DNA of 64,000 nucleotides from the IMG/VR virus record IMGVR_UViG_3300048672_001051, positions 1 through 64,000 of that record; one strand, given 5' to 3'. The notes below the pieces were generated by a model. The model saw nothing but the letters and a program-made list of their open reading frames with translations. It did no database searches and was not told where the DNA came from. This document shows, piece after piece, positions 4,003-11,941 of the stretch; position 1 is the stretch's first letter; each line of letters begins with the position of its first letter. The translations under genes were made by a program, and so were the position numbers.

Positions 4003-4479
4003 ATGAGTAAATACAATCTAGGTAACACTTCAAAATCAAGACTAACTGGCGTTCATCCCGACATTGCAAAAGTCGTTAACCGCGCTATACAGATAACAAC
4101 ACAAGACTTTATGGTTCTAGAAGGAGTCCGTAGTAAAGAGCAGTGCTACATTAATTGGGGCAAAGGACGTTCAGCTGCAACTTTAATCGAAGCTGGAGTG
4201 CCACATAAATATGCACAACCAAATATGTCTAAAGTGACTTGGTTGAGAAATCCGCTAAGCTCTAAGCATTGTCTACAGAAAGATGGCTACGGTCATGCTG
4301 TGGACTTAGTACCATATCCAGTAGACTGGAATACTCTTTCAAAGTTTGACGCGATAGGTAAAGCTATGATGACTGCAGCGAAAGAATTAAATGTCAGCAT
4401 TCGTTGGGGTGCTGATTGGGATAGAGACGGTAAATTAAGAGAACGTGGTGAGTCAGACAGCCCACACTTCGAAATATAA
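4003..4479 (+). CDS. Endolysin, M15 family Zn peptidase (L-Ala-D-Glu peptidase-like)
   Basis: S..RLTGVHPD, EGVRSKEQ, SKH...GHAVD (H-x-D Zn ligands), IRWGADW, DSPHFE. Confidence 0.9.
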   Translation: MSKYNLGNTSKSRLTGVHPDIAKVVNRAIQITTQDFMVLEGVRSKEQCYINWGKGRSAATLIEAGVPHKYAQPNMSKVTWLRNPLSSKHCLQKDGYGHAVDLVPYPVDWNTLSKFDAIGKAMMTAAKELNVSIRWGADWDRDGKLRERGESDSPHFEI

Positions 4480-4492
4480 GCATATCACTGAT

Positions 4493-4966
4493 ATGGTTTC
4501 TAGTTATATACTAGAAACCTATCCGTTTCATAAAGAACCGCATACATACTCTAATGGCTTGATTGTCTTAGGGTATGGCCACAGAATGTCCAAAGAAGAG
4601 CCTTATAAGCGTTTAACTAAAAATAAAGCTAAGGAGTTGTTTTATAAAGATAAAATTAAAATCGAGACTTATTTAAATAAGCGAAAACTATATACCTTAA
4701 CCCAAGAAGAATTTGACGTATTGTTCCATTTTATATATGATCACGGTGTGAACGTTACAAACTCATCTCGATTTGCACACTTCCTTTTAACTAAAAACAC
4801 GGAAGAGGCTTGTAAAGAAATTTTACGGTGGAAATCATATAGAGGCTTATATGATAAAAATCTAGCAGATAGAAGAGATTATGATTACAATATATTAAAA
4901 TTTAAACAATACGAAATAGGTATAACAAATGAATCCAAAAGTAGAAGAATTACTTTTAATGGCTAA
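4493..4966 (+). CDS. GH24 (phage lysozyme)-like protein, catalytic residues apparently lost
   Basis: LGYGH, LTQEEFDVLFHFIYDHG, ACKEILRW and LADRR match the GH24 scaffold, but the E/D/T triad positions read Y/Y/V. Start moved to ATG 4493. Confidence 0.7.
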   Translation: MVSSYILETYPFHKEPHTYSNGLIVLGYGHRMSKEEPYKRLTKNKAKELFYKDKIKIETYLNKRKLYTLTQEEFDVLFHFIYDHGVNVTNSSRFAHFLLTKNTEEACKEILRWKSYRGLYDKNLADRRDYDYNILKFKQYEIGITNESKSRRITFNG

Positions 4967-7052
4967 AAATCTTGGCCTTCAAAAAACAACAGAAGATGAG
5001 TCTAAAACTATCGCTGTAGTTACCGAACAACTTCCATCTGTCTACGAGACACCCACTTTAGGTTTAAACCTAAACACAACTTTCACTACAGATCATATAT
5101 TAACTTCTGTGAAAGTCCCCGCATATAAAAATTTAAATCTTACGGCCGATCAAACAGCCACTACACGAGCTCGTGTAGGTAGACTGACCACAGGTGCCAG
5201 CGCTGCAGTTCCGCTGGCTTGTAGGGGCAGTACATGCCCATTTAAAGCTACTTGCCTAGATGGTGACACTCTAGTTATGACTCCAGGCAAAAATGAATTT
5301 GTAAAAATAAAAAATCTAAAGAAAAACTCTCAAGTGTATTCATACAACGCTGAGACAGGTACGCTAGAGAAAGATAGGGTAGTTGCTATTTTAAGCCAAG
5401 GCATTAAAGAAGTATTTAAAATAACAACAGAGACAGGTAAAATATTAATTTGTACTGAAGACCATCCAATCTTGACAACAAATATAAATAATCAACCAAT
5501 TTTTCTTAAGTTGTGTACAGGCCTAACTGTAGGCTCAGCTATTTACGTCACAGACTATGATACAGATTTAATTGAGTTGAACGACTTTGGAGATCTTTTT
5601 GAAGATAAAATTAAAAGCATTTCATATGAAGGTTTAAAAGATGTTTATGATATTAGTGTTAATATAAATAATACATTTATTGCCAACGGCATAGCCGTCC
5701 ATAATTGCCAACCGACAGATGAGCAAGTACTTGTTGCAGATAAAGGTTATAAGAATATCCAAGACTTAGATCCTACAACAGATAAAGTTGTGACGATGAC
5801 TGAAAAGACTGGTGTTATAAATTATACAGGTAAGGAATTCACACTTCACCAGAGAAGTTACTCAGACACAATTTACACAATTAGTAATGGTATTAATTCT
5901 TACAAGTGTACTAAAGATCATATCTGCTATGCGACATTTAACAAAACTTCTATTAAAAAGCACTTAGTATATTTAATGAGAGTTGGCGACAAGTTTAGAG
6001 TTGGTGTCACAACATTAATGCAAGAGATGCCTAAGAATGGGCGTAGAGTAGGCCCTAGATACGCATTCGGATTGAGAGTTCGTGTAAACATGGAGAAAGC
6101 TGATTGTGCATGGATACTAGGTATTTATGACACAAGAGTTGAAGCTTTGTTAGACGAGGAATACTATTCAATTAAACTTAAAGCACCTAAGTCTTTATTT
6201 ATTGCTGATGATGCTGCGAGACATACCTCGTGGAACGGTAAAAGTAAGCGGGTAACTCAACAACAACTTGACGCCCAATTTAATAAGCTGAACGGTTCAG
6301 TTGAATTTTATGCTAACTTTTTAAAATCTAAAAACTTAGACATAGACTACCCATTCGTAACTCGAAATGGTGGTGCAGTAATACAGATAGGCCTGCCTAT
6401 GCACGTCCGCGCATGCAATTTGATTGACGGCTACATGGACATTGTTAGCGTAGATAGTGGTGTGCAAAGTACACAAAAATTACCATTAAAAGTAACTAGC
6501 AAAGATTTTTATCACGGTTCTGTATACTCTCTAGACGTAGCTGAAGACCATAATTATTTCACTACTGGCGGAATCTTAACTAAGAATTGCCCTTACTATG
6601 AAATTAATGCGCATCAAATAGGCGAAGACTGTTTAGTTGAAGCACAATTAATAGAATTTTATACTGCTAAATTTATAGAAGAATTTGCCATAGATCCAAA
6701 CTCAATAACTGAAGTACATCTAATATCTAGATTAGTAGAAATAACTATATACGAAATTAGAATGACTCAGTACTTAAAACTTAACGACCAAGATTTGATG
6801 GCTGATTTTGTCACAGGTACAGACCTTAACGGTGGCGCTATAACAAACAAAGGGGCGTCCATCGCGTTAGATGTCCAGGAAAAACTTTCTCGTCAGAAAA
6901 TGAAAATACTAGAGTCTTTGAATGGTACTAGAGAACGCAAGACTAAAATATTACTAGAAACTAAATCAACAGAGCGTGATAGTAGCTTGTCAGACTTAAG
7001 AAATAAACTAGACAGATTAGCGCAAGAAATTAATGCAAAGGTAGTTAACTAA
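4929..7052 (+). CDS. Cys-cluster protein (about 262 aa after splicing) interrupted by two tandem inteins; possibly packaging-related
   Basis: Exteins ...ACRGSTCPFKAT and CPYYEINAHQIGEDC... flank two complete HINT domains. C-terminal extein looks helical/coiled-coil. Confidence 0.8.
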   Translation: MNPKVEELLLMAKNLGLQKTTEDESKTIAVVTEQLPSVYETPTLGLNLNTTFTTDHILTSVKVPAYKNLNLTADQTATTRARVGRLTTGASAAVPLACRGSTCPFKATCLDGDTLVMTPGKNEFVKIKNLKKNSQVYSYNAETGTLEKDRVVAILSQGIKEVFKITTETGKILICTEDHPILTTNINNQPIFLKLCTGLTVGSAIYVTDYDTDLIELNDFGDLFEDKIKSISYEGLKDVYDISVNINNTFIANGIAVHNCQPTDEQVLVADKGYKNIQDLDPTTDKVVTMTEKTGVINYTGKEFTLHQRSYSDTIYTISNGINSYKCTKDHICYATFNKTSIKKHLVYLMRVGDKFRVGVTTLMQEMPKNGRRVGPRYAFGLRVRVNMEKADCAWILGIYDTRVEALLDEEYYSIKLKAPKSLFIADDAARHTSWNGKSKRVTQQQLDAQFNKLNGSVEFYANFLKSKNLDIDYPFVTRNGGAVIQIGLPMHVRACNLIDGYMDIVSVDSGVQSTQKLPLKVTSKDFYHGSVYSLDVAEDHNYFTTGGILTKNCPYYEINAHQIGEDCLVEAQLIEFYTAKFIEEFAIDPNSITEVHLISRLVEITIYEIRMTQYLKLNDQDLMADFVTGTDLNGGAITNKGASIALDVQEKLSRQKMKILESLNGTRERKTKILLETKSTERDSSLSDLRNKLDRLAQEINAKVVN
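5253..5705 (+). mobile_element. Mini-intein 1 (151 aa)
   Basis: Block A CLDGDTLV, block B CTEDHPIL, block F VYDISV, block G FIANGIAVHN followed by Cys; no endonuclease domain. Confidence 0.93.
5706..6587 (+). mobile_element. Intein 2 (294 aa) with a central GIY-YIG-like domain
   Basis: CQPTDEQVLV...KNIQDL, block B CTKDH, block F VYSLDV, end HNYFTTGGILTKN followed by Cys. Insert VYLMRVGDKFRVGVT...R...EALLDE. Confidence 0.88.
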
Positions 7053-7054
7053 TT

Positions 7055-7609
7055 ATGTTTATGAACCCAGTTGTGAGCCAAGAAGACCGCAAACTAATAG
7101 GGCACTTAGTTAAGAAGAAAAAACAGAGTGGTAAATACACACACGTTTACTACAATAAAAAAGATTCTAATAACAACTTAAAATATGTAACTGGTGAATT
7201 CTACTCTGCTAAGAATAAAGCACATATGACATATAGGTCATCTTACGAACTGAAGTTCTTACAAACATTAGAAAGTAATGATGACGTTGAAAGATATGCG
7301 TCTGAGTGCTTTACACTACCATATATAAATATTAGTGGTGTAAGAAAAACATATATACCAGACCTGTTAGTTGTATATAAGTCGGGTAAAATTGATATTT
7401 GTGAAATTAAGCCTAAGGCTATGCTAGTTAACGGTGACGTTCAAAGAAAAGCTGCAGCCTGTAGGCAGTTTATAATCTCTAATTTTAAAGGTATTGACTG
7501 CCAGTATAAATTTGTCACAGAAGATGACTTATTTATAAACAGTACGGATTATTCAAAGTTTTTAAAAAGTATAAAAGTAGGTAAAGAATACCATGGCAAC
7601 CAATCGTGA
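7055..7609 (+). CDS. TnsA-like PD-(D/E)xK endonuclease / head-completion nuclease (T4 gp4-like)
   Basis: YRSSYE, YASE.FTLPY, TYIPDLLV, EIKP motifs. Confidence 0.8.
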   Translation: MFMNPVVSQEDRKLIGHLVKKKKQSGKYTHVYYNKKDSNNNLKYVTGEFYSAKNKAHMTYRSSYELKFLQTLESNDDVERYASECFTLPYINISGVRKTYIPDLLVVYKSGKIDICEIKPKAMLVNGDVQRKAAACRQFIISNFKGIDCQYKFVTEDDLFINSTDYSKFLKSIKVGKEYHGNQS

Positions 7610-8984
7610 TCGAATAATATCTTTAGATATCGAGACGACTGGACTACAACCAACAGACCATATATGGTCTGTTGGTATTGCTACTCAAGCGACTCGTAAG
7701 AAAGATAGAGAGATATTTTTAAGTGGTATAACACAATCTAAGAGTAAATCAAAAGCTATAGATGACCTGTTTAACTTACACTCAAACTCTTTTGGACTAT
7801 CTCAACTTGAAAGCGGAGCTTTTGAAGCTTTTGGTAAAGCTGCTGAATCATCAAAGACAGCTAGTTTTAACAGTGCTATTAAAGACTTAAGCGACATGGC
7901 TGCACAAGCAGATGTAATGCTAATCCAAAACGTTAATTTTGAAGATAGGTTTTTAAGTAGCCAAATAACTCCAAAAGCTAAACAAATGCTTACAGATAAA
8001 CTTTATTTTGATACACCAAGTAGCCGTCGGAGATTATTCCAAGAGAGTGCTAGTGTTGAAAATGCTAGAGCTTTGACTATGGCTTCAGGGGAGACTCTTC
8101 GTCAAAGTTTAAAAGATGGCTCCGATGTAGACTCTTACATAGTTAAGCATTCACAGGCTAGCCAAGAACTAATGAGCACTATTAGCCAAACAATTACTGA
8201 CGCTAAGTCCGCTGGAAAAATTGCGGTAGTAGATTTGCTAGATATTACTAGAAGTACTTACGCCGTAGCTGCAGAGAAGGGTTTGGTAAATCCTCAGCAT
8301 ATTGGCATGCTTTCCAATATGGATTTTATAACTAGAGGTTTATTAGGCAGGCCTGAGACGCACAGAGCACTAATGGATGGTCAAGATCAGATACATGCTT
8401 ATAACATATTTAAGGATGGCTATGACGAGCTACTTAAAACTGGTAAATTTACACCAGAACTTCAAAAATTAGCTGATAGTGTAGACTCCGGTTTTCATGA
8501 AATAAACTATAACTTTTTAAAGAGTGTTCGAAGCCACATTGAAGATATTGGCGCTAAGGATAAGCCGACAAATGTTAAAGACGCTGTAACTAAAGTGCTT
8601 GGGCGTACAGATCAAATAGACGAAGGCCTAAATGGTTTTGGTCGTGAATCATACGCTACTAGTCTGTTTGGCAAAGATAAGCCCGAGGCTTTAGCACAAG
8701 TTAACGCTGATTTAAAGTTAATCCAAAATGGCGAACATCAAGCTGTAATTGACCAGCACGCTTATGCTGCAGCGGCGGCTAAAAAAGAAAGTAAACTTAC
8801 AACAAAAGGTAAGATAGGCTTAGGAGTAGCCGCTGTTGTTGGGTTAGGAATTGTTTCCACGCTAGGCGATACGAGTAGAAGAGAGCAAAAACATAATACT
8901 TATAATGAGTTATATGATGAACAATATGTCGGTACAGCTTTAGCAGACTGGCAGGATAGAAATAAAAGTCACAGGATGTCTTAA
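7593..8984 (+). CDS. DEDDh (DnaQ-like) 3'-5' exonuclease-domain protein with a C-terminal hydrophobic helix
   Basis: ExoI LDIETTGL, ExoII-like QNVNFE, ExoIII HRALMD; C-terminal IGLGVAAVVGLGIVSTLG. Confidence 0.75.
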   Translation: MATNRDRIISLDIETTGLQPTDHIWSVGIATQATRKKDREIFLSGITQSKSKSKAIDDLFNLHSNSFGLSQLESGAFEAFGKAAESSKTASFNSAIKDLSDMAAQADVMLIQNVNFEDRFLSSQITPKAKQMLTDKLYFDTPSSRRRLFQESASVENARALTMASGETLRQSLKDGSDVDSYIVKHSQASQELMSTISQTITDAKSAGKIAVVDLLDITRSTYAVAAEKGLVNPQHIGMLSNMDFITRGLLGRPETHRALMDGQDQIHAYNIFKDGYDELLKTGKFTPELQKLADSVDSGFHEINYNFLKSVRSHIEDIGAKDKPTNVKDAVTKVLGRTDQIDEGLNGFGRESYATSLFGKDKPEALAQVNADLKLIQNGEHQAVIDQHAYAAAAAKKESKLTTKGKIGLGVAAVVGLGIVSTLGDTSRREQKHNTYNELYDEQYVGTALADWQDRNKSHRMS

Positions 8985-9746
8985 ATGAGTAACAGAGCTA
9001 AATTAGACGAATTACTTACGCTTAACCCAGATCTTAAATTTGACTCTAAACGTTTTGATACTTTAAAAGATAAAGATCAGAAAAAATTATTAAAAATGTT
9101 ATCCAGCGATGCCTCTAAAGGTAATGGTACTTATAAATTTACCGCAGGTGTTAATACAAACTTTGATTCAAAAGGTACAGCTGGCGTTTTAAACAAAGCA
9201 AAAGCTATGGTTAACCACACTATAGGGCCAAGTGCCGTAGAGGCCTACGCAAACTCTTTTGGATTTATGACCTCAGGTCAGCGTGCAATGAGTGCAAACT
9301 CATCAATGCTTGGTAAATTGTCCTACAAAGCAATACCTGCCTTTGGTGCATTTACAGCGCTATCTGGCGCTGTAGACGGTGAAGATCCGTTCGAGTATGT
9401 GGGTGAACAGATGGCCTTTGGTGGTGCTACGCAGGGTTATAGACTCGGCAGCACACTTGGAACTAGTACGATGGGTCGATTCGGTGCAGGCTTAGTTGGA
9501 GGAGCATTTATAGGCGCTGCTGTTTACGGAGGTTTTGCTGCGGCAAAAGACTTATCAAGTAACACTTCAAGTATAGCTAAAGCTGCCAAAAAAATGTACA
9601 CAAAAGAATTAAGTGTCGCATCATTTGACAATGATAAAACCTTAACAATGAGGCAAGCCGCATTAAGTAAGTTGAGTAATAGCGCGATAAACGACAGAGG
9701 ACTACTTTTAGGTAACGAAGCAATGATACTGCGAGGTTCATTATAA
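8985..9746 (+). CDS. Gly/Ala-rich hydrophobic protein, putative virion/ejected protein
   Basis: Glycine-zipper-like segments FGAGLVGGAFIGAAVYGGFAAA and AIPAFGAFTALSGAV; coupled to terL by TAATG. Confidence 0.5.
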   Translation: MSNRAKLDELLTLNPDLKFDSKRFDTLKDKDQKKLLKMLSSDASKGNGTYKFTAGVNTNFDSKGTAGVLNKAKAMVNHTIGPSAVEAYANSFGFMTSGQRAMSANSSMLGKLSYKAIPAFGAFTALSGAVDGEDPFEYVGEQMAFGGATQGYRLGSTLGTSTMGRFGAGLVGGAFIGAAVYGGFAAAKDLSSNTSSIAKAAKKMYTKELSVASFDNDKTLTMRQAALSKLSNSAINDRGLLLGNEAMILRGSL

Positions 9747-11941
9747 TGGCAGCAATTGATCTATTTGAGATGAGTTGGAAAGACTATTTAGAAATTAAAG
9801 GTTTTAATAAACAAAAAGAAGAAACGATGGCAGAGACGTGTAGGAAATGCCGAGAAGATCAACTTAAAAAACATAAAAAAATTACTATAAAATGTACTGG
9901 CGAGCGTACGATAGAGCATGAATTTACTCAGAAGTATGGTGAAAAAACAGCGAAGGCTGTATTAGCTCATTTGCAAGACGACCCGACAGAGATGCTGCAA
10001 GCGTCGTCTGCATACAATCCTTACGATTTTATGCGCGCAAATATTACAGACCCTAAATTGTTTAACCCACGCTGGTACCAAGAGAAAGCTGTACTTTGCT
10101 CTGCGACTAAAAAAGTTTTACGGATGGGTCGTCGCTGTATAGCAAAAGATGAACTTGTACTGATGGCCGATTACAGTTATAAAAAAATTCAAGATATAGA
10201 GCCTGGCGATTATGTAATAAGTAATAAGTATGACAAAGCTACTACACAAATAGTTACACATAAATACAATAACGGTGTTCAGCCGGTGTATGAAGTGCTC
10301 ACAGAGAAAAATCATAAAGTAAGATTAACCGAAGACCATGAAATTTTAACTAAACGAGGCTGGGTGACAATAGCTCAAGGCTTATCTAATGTTGACTATA
10401 TAAGTACTCTAGCCTCAAAAGAGTCTACAGATTATGAGTATTTACGAGTAAAGAGTATAACTCCGATAGGTCTTCAAGAAGTCTACGATATTACAGTTCC
10501 AGGTACTAATAACTTCACTGTAGAAGGACTGACGGTACACAATTGCGGTAAGACATACTCTATGGTTGTTGGTATGTTGCACAACTTACTAACAAAGCCT
10601 GGGTACACAGTACTAATAGCTGCACCGCAAATAACTATGATTGACGAGATAGTTAGCGCTTGCGAAGAAATCTGTAGGCAGCTTAAGACAGAGTATCCTA
10701 TAGTTAGAAATTCTTCTAGCCCTATTATAGAAATTGAGTTTAATAATGGCTCTATAATAAAAGGTGTTACAACAGCCAACGACGCAAAATCTGCTCGTGG
10801 TAAAAGCGCCGATTTGATTTGGCTAGAAGAAGCTGACTTTATTGAAAAGAAGGCCTTAAACTCTATTCTAGGGGTTTTGGCAGATAGGTCAGACATCGAA
10901 CTTTGGGTCTCTTCAACACCAATTGGTGAAAGAAATCTTTACAGTCTAGCTCAAAGACCAGATATAAGAGAATTTCACTATCCAACTTTTGTTGTTCCCC
11001 ACTACGAGTCTGAAAACTTAGACGAGTTTTTCCGTGGAGCAATGACACAGTCTGGTTATGTACAAGAAGTGATGGCTGAGTATGGTGTAGACGTTGATAG
11101 TGTTTTCCAGATCATGTTTATTGAGGAGAGTACTGAACTAGAGCGAGATCCTTACTATTCAGTAGAGAGTGTGTTAGCTAACAGACAGGATTTTATAGTC
11201 TTTATAGGTGTAGATTGGAACCATGATAAAGTTGGTACAAGAATTGTTGTAACAGCTTACTCACGTTCAAGAAATATTTTATTTATTGTTAAGAAAGAGA
11301 AAGTGTCATCAGTTGGTTGGACACAAGCATTAGCTGTGGAGTCTATAGTTAATTTAAACAGATTGTTTGCAGCTGATCATATATATGTAGATGAAGGTTT
11401 TGGTATAGGCCAAGTTACAGAGCTTAGAAAAAAAGGTGTAGAAGCCTATGGTAAAGTTGCAAACGATCATCCAGATTTAAAATTAGAGCAGACTGTATCA
11501 GTGCAATTTGGATCTAGTATAAAAATACATGATCCTATAACTGGTGAAGTTTACAGCAAGCGTGTTAAACAATACATGGTTGAGAATTTATCAAACACGC
11601 TAGAGAAGAAATCTTTATACTTCTCAAGTGTTGAAGATAATGATATAATCATGCAAATGAAGAACTATCTTATAAAAAATGTTTCTGTTAACGGAGCCAA
11701 GTCTTATAGTTTTAGAGATAAGCAAATAGCTGATCACGACTTAGATGCATTTATGTTGACTATCTACGCGTTTAATGTAGAATACGGGGATTATATAAGA
11801 CCACAAAGTCTAGAGTATGCGGCAGGATTTGGCAAAGAATTGCTAGAGCCTGCGCTGAAAATGGATAGTCTTTACGACGCAATTGGTGTATATGTCTCCC
11901 GTACATCAAAATCAAAATTTAAACCAAAACGTAAATGGTAG
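9746..11941 (+). CDS. terL: Terminase large subunit, intein-containing
   Basis: PRWYQ adenine-binding motif, Walker A RMGRR/CGKT split by an intein, Walker B LIWLEEAD, motif III SSTP, nuclease FIGVDWN / YVDEG / DHDLDA. Confidence 0.93.
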   Translation: MAAIDLFEMSWKDYLEIKGFNKQKEETMAETCRKCREDQLKKHKKITIKCTGERTIEHEFTQKYGEKTAKAVLAHLQDDPTEMLQASSAYNPYDFMRANITDPKLFNPRWYQEKAVLCSATKKVLRMGRRCIAKDELVLMADYSYKKIQDIEPGDYVISNKYDKATTQIVTHKYNNGVQPVYEVLTEKNHKVRLTEDHEILTKRGWVTIAQGLSNVDYISTLASKESTDYEYLRVKSITPIGLQEVYDITVPGTNNFTVEGLTVHNCGKTYSMVVGMLHNLLTKPGYTVLIAAPQITMIDEIVSACEEICRQLKTEYPIVRNSSSPIIEIEFNNGSIIKGVTTANDAKSARGKSADLIWLEEADFIEKKALNSILGVLADRSDIELWVSSTPIGERNLYSLAQRPDIREFHYPTFVVPHYESENLDEFFRGAMTQSGYVQEVMAEYGVDVDSVFQIMFIEESTELERDPYYSVESVLANRQDFIVFIGVDWNHDKVGTRIVVTAYSRSRNILFIVKKEKVSSVGWTQALAVESIVNLNRLFAADHIYVDEGFGIGQVTELRKKGVEAYGKVANDHPDLKLEQTVSVQFGSSIKIHDPITGEVYSKRVKQYMVENLSNTLEKKSLYFSSVEDNDIIMQMKNYLIKNVSVNGAKSYSFRDKQIADHDLDAFMLTIYAFNVEYGDYIRPQSLEYAAGFGKELLEPALKMDSLYDAIGVYVSRTSKSKFKPKRKW
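10136..10543 (+). mobile_element. Mini-intein (136 aa) in the TerL Walker A motif
   Basis: CIAKDELV...LTEDHEIL...VYDITV...FTVEGLTVHN followed by CGKT. Confidence 0.93.

Follow-up and report, generated by a model that had tools for sequence, protein, structure and literature searches.

Can two complete inteins occupy a single insertion site with no extein residue between them, and if so, how might both be removed around one shared cysteine? The question is raised by an open reading frame of 707 aa, uninterrupted by stop codons, in a window of 64,000 nucleotides (positions 1 to 64,000 of the IMG/VR record IMGVR_UViG_3300048672_001051, a 229.7-kb jumbo phage contig related to Acinetobacter phage ME3 and Bacillus phage 0305phi8-36). 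With splice junctions marked by a slash, the ORF reads CPFKAT/C..VHN/CQP..TKN/CPYY. An earlier note, made from the sequence alone, described two back-to-back inteins here and proposed that Cys1 of the second doubles as the +1 nucleophile of the first, so that the two reactions compete for one residue and may be ordered or act as a two-step gate on maturation. We find that the observation of a zero-spacer pair holds, with every junction exactly where the note placed it and 151 + 294 = 445 of the 707 residues to be excised. The interpretation is only partly supported, as the sharing of the cysteine follows directly from the sequence but there is no evidence for harmful competition, obligatory order or a regulatory gate. 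The features of the locus are collected in Table 1.

Table 1. Features of the tandem-intein gene, in window coordinates; dN/dS values are for the comparison with L006, a syntenic relative.
Position (nt)	Strand	Residues (aa)	Feature	Observations
4929-7052	+	1-707	Precursor gene; host protein (262 aa after splicing) a putative small terminase subunit	Orthologues ME3 gp9 and 0305phi8-36 gp112
4929-5252	+	1-108	N-extein	Ends CRGSTCPFKAT; holds Cys1 (aa 98) and Cys2 (aa 103) of the four-Cys motif
5253-5705	+	109-259	Intein 1, class-1 mini-intein of 151 aa without an endonuclease domain	Thr108/Cys109 junction at 5253; C109, TEDH 176-179, VHN 257-259; dN/dS 0.027
5703-5708	+	259-260	Intein-intein junction, Asn259/Cys260, no extein codon between	5705/5706, CAT AAT/TGC CAA CCG
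5706-5960	+	260-344	Intein 2, N-terminal HINT lobe	Starts CQP; block B TKDH 328-331; dN/dS 0.046
5961-6410	+	about 345-494	Intein 2, central domain of unidentified family, where inteins carry their homing endonuclease	Confidently predicted (AF2) b-b-a-b-a plus helices; 7- and 34-aa deletions in L006; dN/dS 0.43
6411-6587	+	495-553	Intein 2, C-terminal HINT lobe	Block F DHNYF; ends TKN, with Lys552 where most family members have the penultimate His; Asn553/Cys554 junction at 6587/6588; dN/dS 0.030
6588-7049	+	554-707	C-extein	Cys554 is Cys3 of the motif and the +1 of intein 2; Cys568 is Cys4

The first step is to establish that each insert is an intein. Intein 1 matches the Pfam Intein_splicing model over positions 6-155 of 155 (E 6.7e-17), and has the block A, B, F and G features, the terminal Asn and the +1 Cys expected of a class-1 intein. 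Intein 2 alone is weak against Pfam (Hint E 0.018, Intein_splicing E 0.048). However, an HMM of the mini-intein aligns to both its N lobe (E 1.2e-21) and its C lobe (E 8.8e-08), and a family profile hits solved inteins by sequence, for example Mja KlbA (E 1.2e-07). In addition, its AF2 model (pLDDT 93.7) matches intein, bacterial intein-like (BIL) and Hedgehog HINT structures over both ends in Foldseek searches, with TM 0.6-0.8 on the target. Among 162 family copies, Cys1 is present in 161, the block-B Thr in 160, the block-B His in 161 and the terminal Asn in 162. Although the top Foldseek hit is a BIL domain, the insert does not fit the BIL class, as it sits at an invariant Cys, the +1 residue is C or S in 84 of 85 copies, and exact empty alleles exist. 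The penultimate His, common but not obligatory in inteins, is found in 126 of 162 family members but not in intein 2. In some inteins its absence slows Asn cyclisation, although 32 of the 36 family members without it have the block-F His, as this one does.

Intein 2 belongs to a family of over 1,000 proteins that includes the annotated intein of the SPO1 helicase. The family, CQPPG...THN, also interrupts UvrD-type helicases (for example SPO1 gp34.33) and methylases. Its conserved central domain, about 150 aa, is presumably a homing nuclease, although its nuclease nature is assumed. The invariant residues are Y89, G100, R126 and E151 in intein numbering. We found no Pfam, PHROG or PDB sequence match for the domain, no Pfam hit to it in 42 family members, and no match in sequence comparisons to the known intein endonuclease families (LAGLIDADG, HNH, GIY-YIG, Vsr-like). 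A GIY-YIG identity was suggested by the motif VYLM..G.KFRVG, the conserved R and E, and the b-b-a-b-a topology. However, Pfam gave only Tox-URI2 at E 0.045-0.11, and hhalign comparison with T4 I-TevI and SegG gave a probability below 2%, and this identity was dropped.

The second step is to ask whether the spacer is truly zero. The earlier note predicted that intein-free homologues should read straight across the insert, and the homologue P0042 (P numbers denote the proteins of our sample) reads CPFRTK-CPYF as expected. 0305phi8-36 gp112 also lacks intein 1. About 25 homologues, including ME3 gp9 and P0007-P0031, carry only intein 1 at this site and end ..VHN/CPY, while seven carry only an intein-2 type there and begin /CQPPG or /CHPPG. 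No homologue keeps part of the insert as extein. The zero-spacer tandem itself occurs in seven protein clusters, P0001-P0006 and P0043, from Logan, JGI and ENA assemblies. The same junction occurs in syntenic contigs from at least three other samples (L006, L007 and L008 are syntenic), and P0003 is identical in two samples.

The tandem appears to be old. The tandem intein-2 copies form one clade (SH-aLRT 97), and all intein-1 carriers fall in one extein clade (support 98) with the tandems as a basal grade. The intein-1 tree has the same broad shape, and the intein-1, intein-2 and extein trees broadly agree, although the placements of P0005 and P0006 differ between trees with weak support. Exteins, intein 1 and the intein-2 lobes are about equally diverged among the tandems, at 35-47% identity, which fits co-inheritance. 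However, vertical inheritance is not cleanly separated from repeated re-invasion of intein-1 alleles, and synonymous divergence between the window and L006 is lower in intein 2 (0.43-0.59) than in intein 1 (2.3). Both splicing domains are under strong purifying selection, with dN/dS as low in these lobes as in the extein, while the central domain decays in L006. Asn259, Cys260 and both TxxH blocks are kept in all seven lineages.

The insertion point lies directly before the third cysteine of a Cys-x4-Cys-x5-Cys-x~13-Cys motif. The four Cys are invariant in 74-75 of 75 spliced exteins, and in this family inteins sit before each of the four. The host protein is probably a small terminase subunit, but this assignment rests on weak fold matches: a BFVD fold search returned many small-terminase models at E 9e-3 to 0.5 and TM 0.44-0.63 over about 100 columns, while Foldseek against the PDB gave no match below E 0.8, and Pfam and PHROGs gave nothing significant. 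The orthologues lie 4-5 genes upstream of the TerL gene, and TerL is found four genes downstream in the window, ME3 and 0305phi8-36, a synteny that supports the assignment. A tblastn search of phages with the N-extein gave no match.

The note considered zero-spacer tandems rare. Full-text literature searches for tandem, adjacent, nested or neighbouring inteins, including PMC4760082, PMC10710043 and the actinobacteriophage intein preprint, found no description of a zero-spacer pair. However, the arrangement arose at least twice within our sample of 188 proteins, as a second, independent zero-spacer tandem occurs in a UvrD-like helicase (P0054). A search of IMG/VR with the DNA pattern for THNC[QH]PPG gave two chance matches in GC-rich non-intein frames, and a protein search restricted to the junction region (aa 205-345) returned only the close relatives already known.

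Taken together, we are fairly confident that this is a real, old and stably inherited stack of two autonomous class-1 inteins, most simply read as two selfish elements on one hot spot. In this view, intein 1 is a mini-intein that the host lineage has carried vertically, both inteins target the same site in different homologues, and in the ancestor of this clade intein 2 landed exactly at the junction between intein 1 and the C-extein. The anatomy of the two inserts, the exact junctions, the alleles and the double role of Cys260 by position are seen in the sequences, whereas splicing itself, and with it the course of maturation, is inferred, from the purifying selection on the lobes and from the presumably essential host protein. 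Cys260 is both Cys1 of intein 2 and the only possible +1 nucleophile of intein 1 while intein 2 is still in place. Maturation would need two complete splicing reactions, and either order would give CPFKAT-CPYY. If intein 1 left first, Cys260 would act as its +1 nucleophile, the N-extein thioester on Cys260 would already be the activated first intermediate of intein 2, and the product would be an ordinary intein-2 precursor, like the seven homologues with only that type. If intein 2 left first, it would ligate intein 1 to Cys554 and recreate the ordinary single-intein precursor, with the native +1 as in ME3. With no linker, the last strand of intein 1 and the first strand of intein 2 are contiguous, and both domains may therefore not be able to fold at once. 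Only after both excisions would Cys3 and Cys4 be brought next to Cys1 and Cys2, so that the presumed metal site and the function of the protein would depend on both events.

An alternative that we consider unlikely, although it is not excluded, is that the tandem has evolved into one coupled device. Intein 1 would fire first and hand the N-extein thioester to Cys260, and intein 2 would pass it on to Cys554 without re-forming a peptide bond, its C-terminal step slowed so that it waits. This would give a two-step, possibly redox- or metal-sensitive, gate on terminase maturation. The one comparative hint of such tuning is that the downstream intein lacks the penultimate His and has the block-F His in 8 of 8 tandem copies, seven in this clade and the second intein of P0054. 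By contrast, 28 of 154 other copies lack the His, and 43 of 43 non-tandem copies in the same host family have HN, as does the upstream copy in P0054 (naive Fisher p 3e-6). The tandem has also persisted over deep divergence, and the +1 residues are ligands of the four-Cys motif. However, the 8 copies represent only two independent origins, so the correlation is weak (roughly p 0.03 if counted by origin). Both single-intein alleles exist and evidently work, so no coupling is needed, and intein 2 was lost again in most of the clade, which argues against an indispensable regulatory role. In an extension that is likewise unlikely, the two HINT domains, with no linker, would have to share a fused active-site region, the N-extein acyl group would be relayed as a thioester from Cys109 to Cys260 to Cys554, and the downstream intein would be tuned to wait by the exchange of the penultimate His for a block-F His, an exchange that arose independently in the helicase tandem. 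The pair would then move as one homing unit at the DNA level, with the endonuclease-less mini-intein hitch-hiking on the nuclease of its neighbor.

It is very unlikely that the pair is a composite intein that uses only Cys109 and Asn553/Cys554 and leaves as one 445-aa piece, with one inner catalytic set vestigial. HINT geometry, in which both termini of an intein meet in its own pocket, implies that without a linker the two active sites must touch. However, Asn259, Cys260, the HN of intein 1 and the TxxH of intein 2 are kept in all seven lineages despite about 60% sequence change, the lobes are under strong constraint, and each HINT domain has a complete predicted fold of its own.

An assembly chimera of co-occurring intein-1 and intein-2 alleles, both of which exist at this codon, can be all but dismissed, as the same junction is found in seven clusters at 35-97% identity, from different samples and assemblers, on contigs of up to 229 kb with conserved gene order, and the tandem intein-2 copies form their own clade, distinct from those that sit alone at Cys3.

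Intein chemistry is defined by the residues at the two splice junctions, and here one junction lies between two inteins. A natural example kept over deep divergence would show that the chemistry tolerates a single cysteine serving as first nucleophile of one intein and +1 nucleophile of the other. It offers a system for asking whether neighboring inteins splice in a fixed order, whether a thioester can be passed directly from one to the next, and whether two HINT domains can fold with no linker. The family also shows how mobile elements pile up on one hot spot, with all four cysteines of the motif serving as landing sites, and suggests how a mini-intein without its own nuclease could spread alongside a neighbor that has one. 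For protein engineering, a natural orthogonal pair that works back to back would be useful.

Proteins with several inteins at nearby sites are already known, for example haloarchaeal MCM sites a and d (PMC10643990), M. smegmatis DnaB i1/i2 (PMC6195587) and T. kodakarensis MCM. In these cases two inteins, often one mini-intein and one with an endonuclease, sit in one conserved host protein and cluster at functionally critical residues, and in the MCM case the double state arises mainly by invasion of alleles that already carry one intein. However, extein residues separate those inteins and each has its own -1 and +1 residues, whereas here the -1 of intein 2 is the terminal Asn of intein 1 and the +1 of intein 1 is Cys1 of intein 2. 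The single mini-intein of ME3 gp9 (deposited as RNA (guanine-N1-)-methyltransferase) is orthologous to intein 1 and lies at the identical site of the orthologous host protein, CAFKQT/CLTGD..FIVHN/CPYW, but there is no second intein and the extein Cys serves as +1. The inteins of the UvrD-type helicases of Bacillus phage SPO1 (gp34.33) and CampHawk, annotated as such in GenBank, are of the same family as intein 2, 28-30% identical over all 294 aa, central domain included; family members start CQP, CHP or CSP and most end THN. The helicase intein differs in host protein and site (motif VGDxxQ/SIYxF), stands alone, and has the penultimate His. Engineered tandem or consecutive split-intein schemes for three-piece ligation (for example PMC12707363) likewise need two splicing reactions to make one product, but they are artificial, work in trans with orthogonal pairs, and place an extein segment between the two inteins.

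The ORF carrying the two inteins is uninterrupted and reads ..CRGSTCPFKAT / CLDGD..GIAVHN / CQPTDEQ..GGILTKN / CPYYEINAHQIGEDCLVE.., where the slashes mark the three splice boundaries. The earlier note had reported two inteins fused end to end at these positions, and that observation held, with its coordinates and residue numbers exact. The two inteins account for 151 + 294 = 445 residues between the exteins.

Locations of the features discussed, in the window unless another contig is named
Feature	Location	Strand	Description
Lysozyme gene	4445-4966		Upstream gene
Overlap of lysozyme and precursor genes	4929-4966		38 nt; the same overlap is seen in the contigs L006 and L007, both syntenic with the window
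Precursor ORF	4929-7052	+	707 aa
N-extein/intein 1 boundary	nt 5252/5253		
Intein 1	aa 109-259		Mini-intein
Intein 1/intein 2 boundary	nt 5705/5706		
Intein 2	aa 260-553		
Central domain of intein 2	5961-6410		
Intein 2/C-extein boundary	nt 6587/6588		
Four-site intein hot spot of the host family	around 5217-5252 and 6588-6641		
Region compared with L006, the closest relative	5660-6710		
TnsA-like endonuclease N-terminal domain protein	7055-7609	+	Called head completion protein in Acinetobacter phage ME3
DEDD/RNase T-type exonuclease	7593-8984	+	
Large terminase gene (TerL)	9746-11941	+	731 aa; Pfam Terminase_3/6N
Intein in TerL	about 10136-10543		Mini-intein
ME3 gp9 gene	L001:3176-4471		L001 is the Acinetobacter phage ME3 sequence
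P0054, UvrD-like helicase	L012:434-4060		Logan SRR29748438; intein-intein junction aa 537/538

Intein 1 matches the Pfam model Intein_splicing over its whole length (E 6.7e-17). It has Cys1, TEDH in block B and VHN at its end, and it lacks an endonuclease domain.

Intein 2 is only weakly matched by Pfam on its own, and we therefore examined it further. A search of 1.84 billion representative proteins identified 1,073 relatives at E <= 1e-3, most of which match over all 294 residues inside larger proteins. In 85 full-length matches the first residue is Cys in 84, the last is Asn in 85, and the following residue is Cys or Ser in 84. In 162 aligned copies the block-B Thr and His are present in 160 and 161, respectively. 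An HMM of the mini-intein aligns to the first ~85 and last ~55 residues of intein 2. An AlphaFold2 model built on 42 relatives has a mean pLDDT of 93.7, and Foldseek matches this model to solved inteins, BIL and Hedgehog HINT domains across both ends with target TM-scores of 0.6-0.8. A sequence profile of the family also hits solved inteins. In GenBank phages the family includes the annotated intein of the SPO1 gp34.33 / CampHawk UvrD-type helicase and inserts in Streptococcus phage methylases. Intein 2 is therefore a real intein of a large, partly annotated family.

At the position where inteins carry their homing endonuclease, intein 2 has a domain of ~150 aa with no sequence match in Pfam, PHROG or the PDB. 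A GIY-YIG identity was considered for this domain, but failed when tested. The domain is the best-conserved part of the whole precursor among the deep tandem lineages (57-64% identity against 35-47%), and it is probably an undescribed intein-borne nuclease family shared with the SPO1 helicase intein.

The insertion site is occupied in different ways in the relatives. The intein-free homologue P0042 (264 aa) reads ..CKGSSCPFRTK-CPYFQSGIHETGEDCLVE.., and gp112 of Bacillus phage 0305phi8-36 is also intein-free. Acinetobacter phage ME3 gp9 has only the mini-intein at the same codon, CAFKQT/CLTGD..FIVHN/CPYW, as do about 25 metagenomic homologues. The ME3 gene was deposited as an 'RNA (guanine-N1-)-methyltransferase', a name for which we found no support; it is the orthologue of this host protein with one unannotated mini-intein. 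Seven other homologues have only an intein-2-type element at this codon. The boundaries of each intein are thus fixed independently of the other, and the junction VHN/CQP contains no extein residue.

The arrangement is not an artefact. The identical architecture is found in the homologues P0002 (84% identical), P0003 (70%), P0004, P0005, P0006 and P0043 (26-50% identical to one another in each part), which come from Logan, JGI and ENA assemblies. P0002 and P0003 lie on contigs syntenic with the window, the shared gene order being tail-fibre-like gene, M15 peptidase, lysozyme, this gene, TnsA-like nuclease, exonuclease and then TerL. In addition, P0003 occurs identically in two samples.

To examine the history of the pair we removed the inteins computationally and aligned 75 exteins. 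All intein-1 carriers fall in one clade of 35 (support 98), in which the tandem carriers form a basal grade and the intein-1-only proteins, plus the intein-free P0042, are nested. P0042 is the only intein-free member of this close clade, and its position among intein-1 carriers implies a precise loss of the intein. The seven tandem intein-2 copies form one clade (support 97), and its nearest relatives are intein-2 copies that sit before the fourth Cys in the same host clade. The intein-1 tree has the same broad shape as the extein tree. Among the deep tandem lineages, exteins, intein 1 and the intein-2 lobes are about equally diverged, mostly at 35-47% identity; for example, the distance between P0004 and P0043 is about the same in the intein-2 tree and the extein tree.

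In the simplest history, the ancestor of the clade carried intein 1, an intein-2 copy landed once at the junction between intein 1 and the C-extein, and the pair was then inherited together, with intein 2 later lost precisely in several branches (P0065, P0007 and the large intein-1-only group). However, re-invasion is not excluded. Between the window and L006, synonymous divergence is lower in intein 2 (0.43-0.59) than in intein 1 (2.3) or the N-extein (0.78), and DNA identity rises from about 0.80 to about 0.90 over the intein-2 lobes and the start of the C-extein. This may mean a more recent exchange of intein 2 between these phages.

Both splicing domains appear to be maintained. Between the window and L006, dN/dS is 0.027 for intein 1 and 0.046 and 0.030 for the two lobes of intein 2. 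For the central domain of intein 2 it is 0.43, and in L006 that domain has also lost 7 and 34 residues together with the conserved Arg and Glu. This is the classic pattern of endonuclease decay with the splicing function retained, although both the splicing and the nuclease activity are inferred here from sequence. Asn259, Cys260, both TxxH blocks and both terminal Asn residues are kept in all seven lineages, which argues against a vestigial inner junction.

The spliced host protein has four cysteines, C-x4-C-x5-C-x~13-C, that are invariant in 74-75 of 75 family members, and inteins sit immediately before every one of them in the family. Another, large intein type is found before Cys1 in the homologue P0076, and 13 intein-2 copies lie before Cys2. 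Before Cys3, intein 1 occurs alone in 25 proteins, plus P0065 (which also has intein 2 at Cys4), intein 2 occurs alone in 7, and the tandem in 7. A further 23 intein-2 copies lie before Cys4. P0004 carries three inteins: the tandem, then 14 extein residues, then a further intein 2.

An AF2 model of P0042 (pLDDT 80.6) finds nothing in the PDB. Against predicted viral structures it matches its own family and then a long series of small-terminase models, although these matches are weak (E 9e-3 to 0.5, TM 0.44-0.63 over ~100 columns). TerL lies four genes downstream here and four to five genes downstream in ME3 and 0305phi8-36, and the TnsA-like protein and the exonuclease lie between the two probable terminase genes. 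Given this context, a small terminase subunit is the best guess for the host protein, at moderate confidence. That the four-Cys motif binds a metal is an inference. The large terminase carries its own mini-intein inside the Walker A loop, MGRR/CIAKDE..LTVHN/CGKT, and the TerL of L006 has it too. Both probable packaging subunits of this phage would therefore need protein splicing.

Whereas the architecture, its recurrence and the conservation of the junction residues are shown by our analysis, splicing itself and the way in which the two reactions proceed are inferred from standard class-1 intein chemistry (an N-S acyl shift at Cys1, transthioesterification to the +1 Cys, Asn cyclisation and an S-N shift). 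If intein 2 acts first, it would join Asn259 to Cys554, and the product would be the ME3-type single-intein precursor. If intein 1 acts first, Cys260 would be its +1 nucleophile, and after cyclisation of Asn259 the N-extein would sit as a thioester on Cys260. That is exactly the first intermediate of intein 2, and a direct relay to Cys554 is therefore chemically possible. The earlier note had proposed that the two reactions compete for Cys260 and may be ordered or gated, and this interpretation is only partly supported. In this scheme the reactions would conflict only transiently. While Cys260 holds the Asn259 acyl group it could not attack the thioester of intein 1, and premature cyclisation of Asn259 would give dead-end cleavage.

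One comparative signal fits tuning of the downstream intein. All seven tandem intein-2 copies end in K/N/A/R-Asn instead of His-Asn, while all 43 non-tandem copies in the same host family have His-Asn. The only other zero-spacer tandem that we found is in P0054, where two sister intein-2 copies sit back to back in the motif VGDxxQ/SIYxF of the helicase (VGDASQ/C..THN/CHPPG..TQN/CLFEF). This second tandem is independent of the first; the upstream copy ends in THN and the downstream copy in TQN, which again lacks the penultimate His. All eight downstream copies have the block-F His. However, these represent only two independent origins, and the correlation is a lead and not a result.

We found no paper describing a natural pair of inteins with no extein residue between them, and to our knowledge none has otherwise been described, although absence from the literature searched is not proof. 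In contrast, several inteins in one protein are common, and neighbouring inteins are known to interact at the homing level (PMC10643990) and to splice at different rates (PMC6195587). The pair described here differs from these cases in that no extein residue separates the two inteins.
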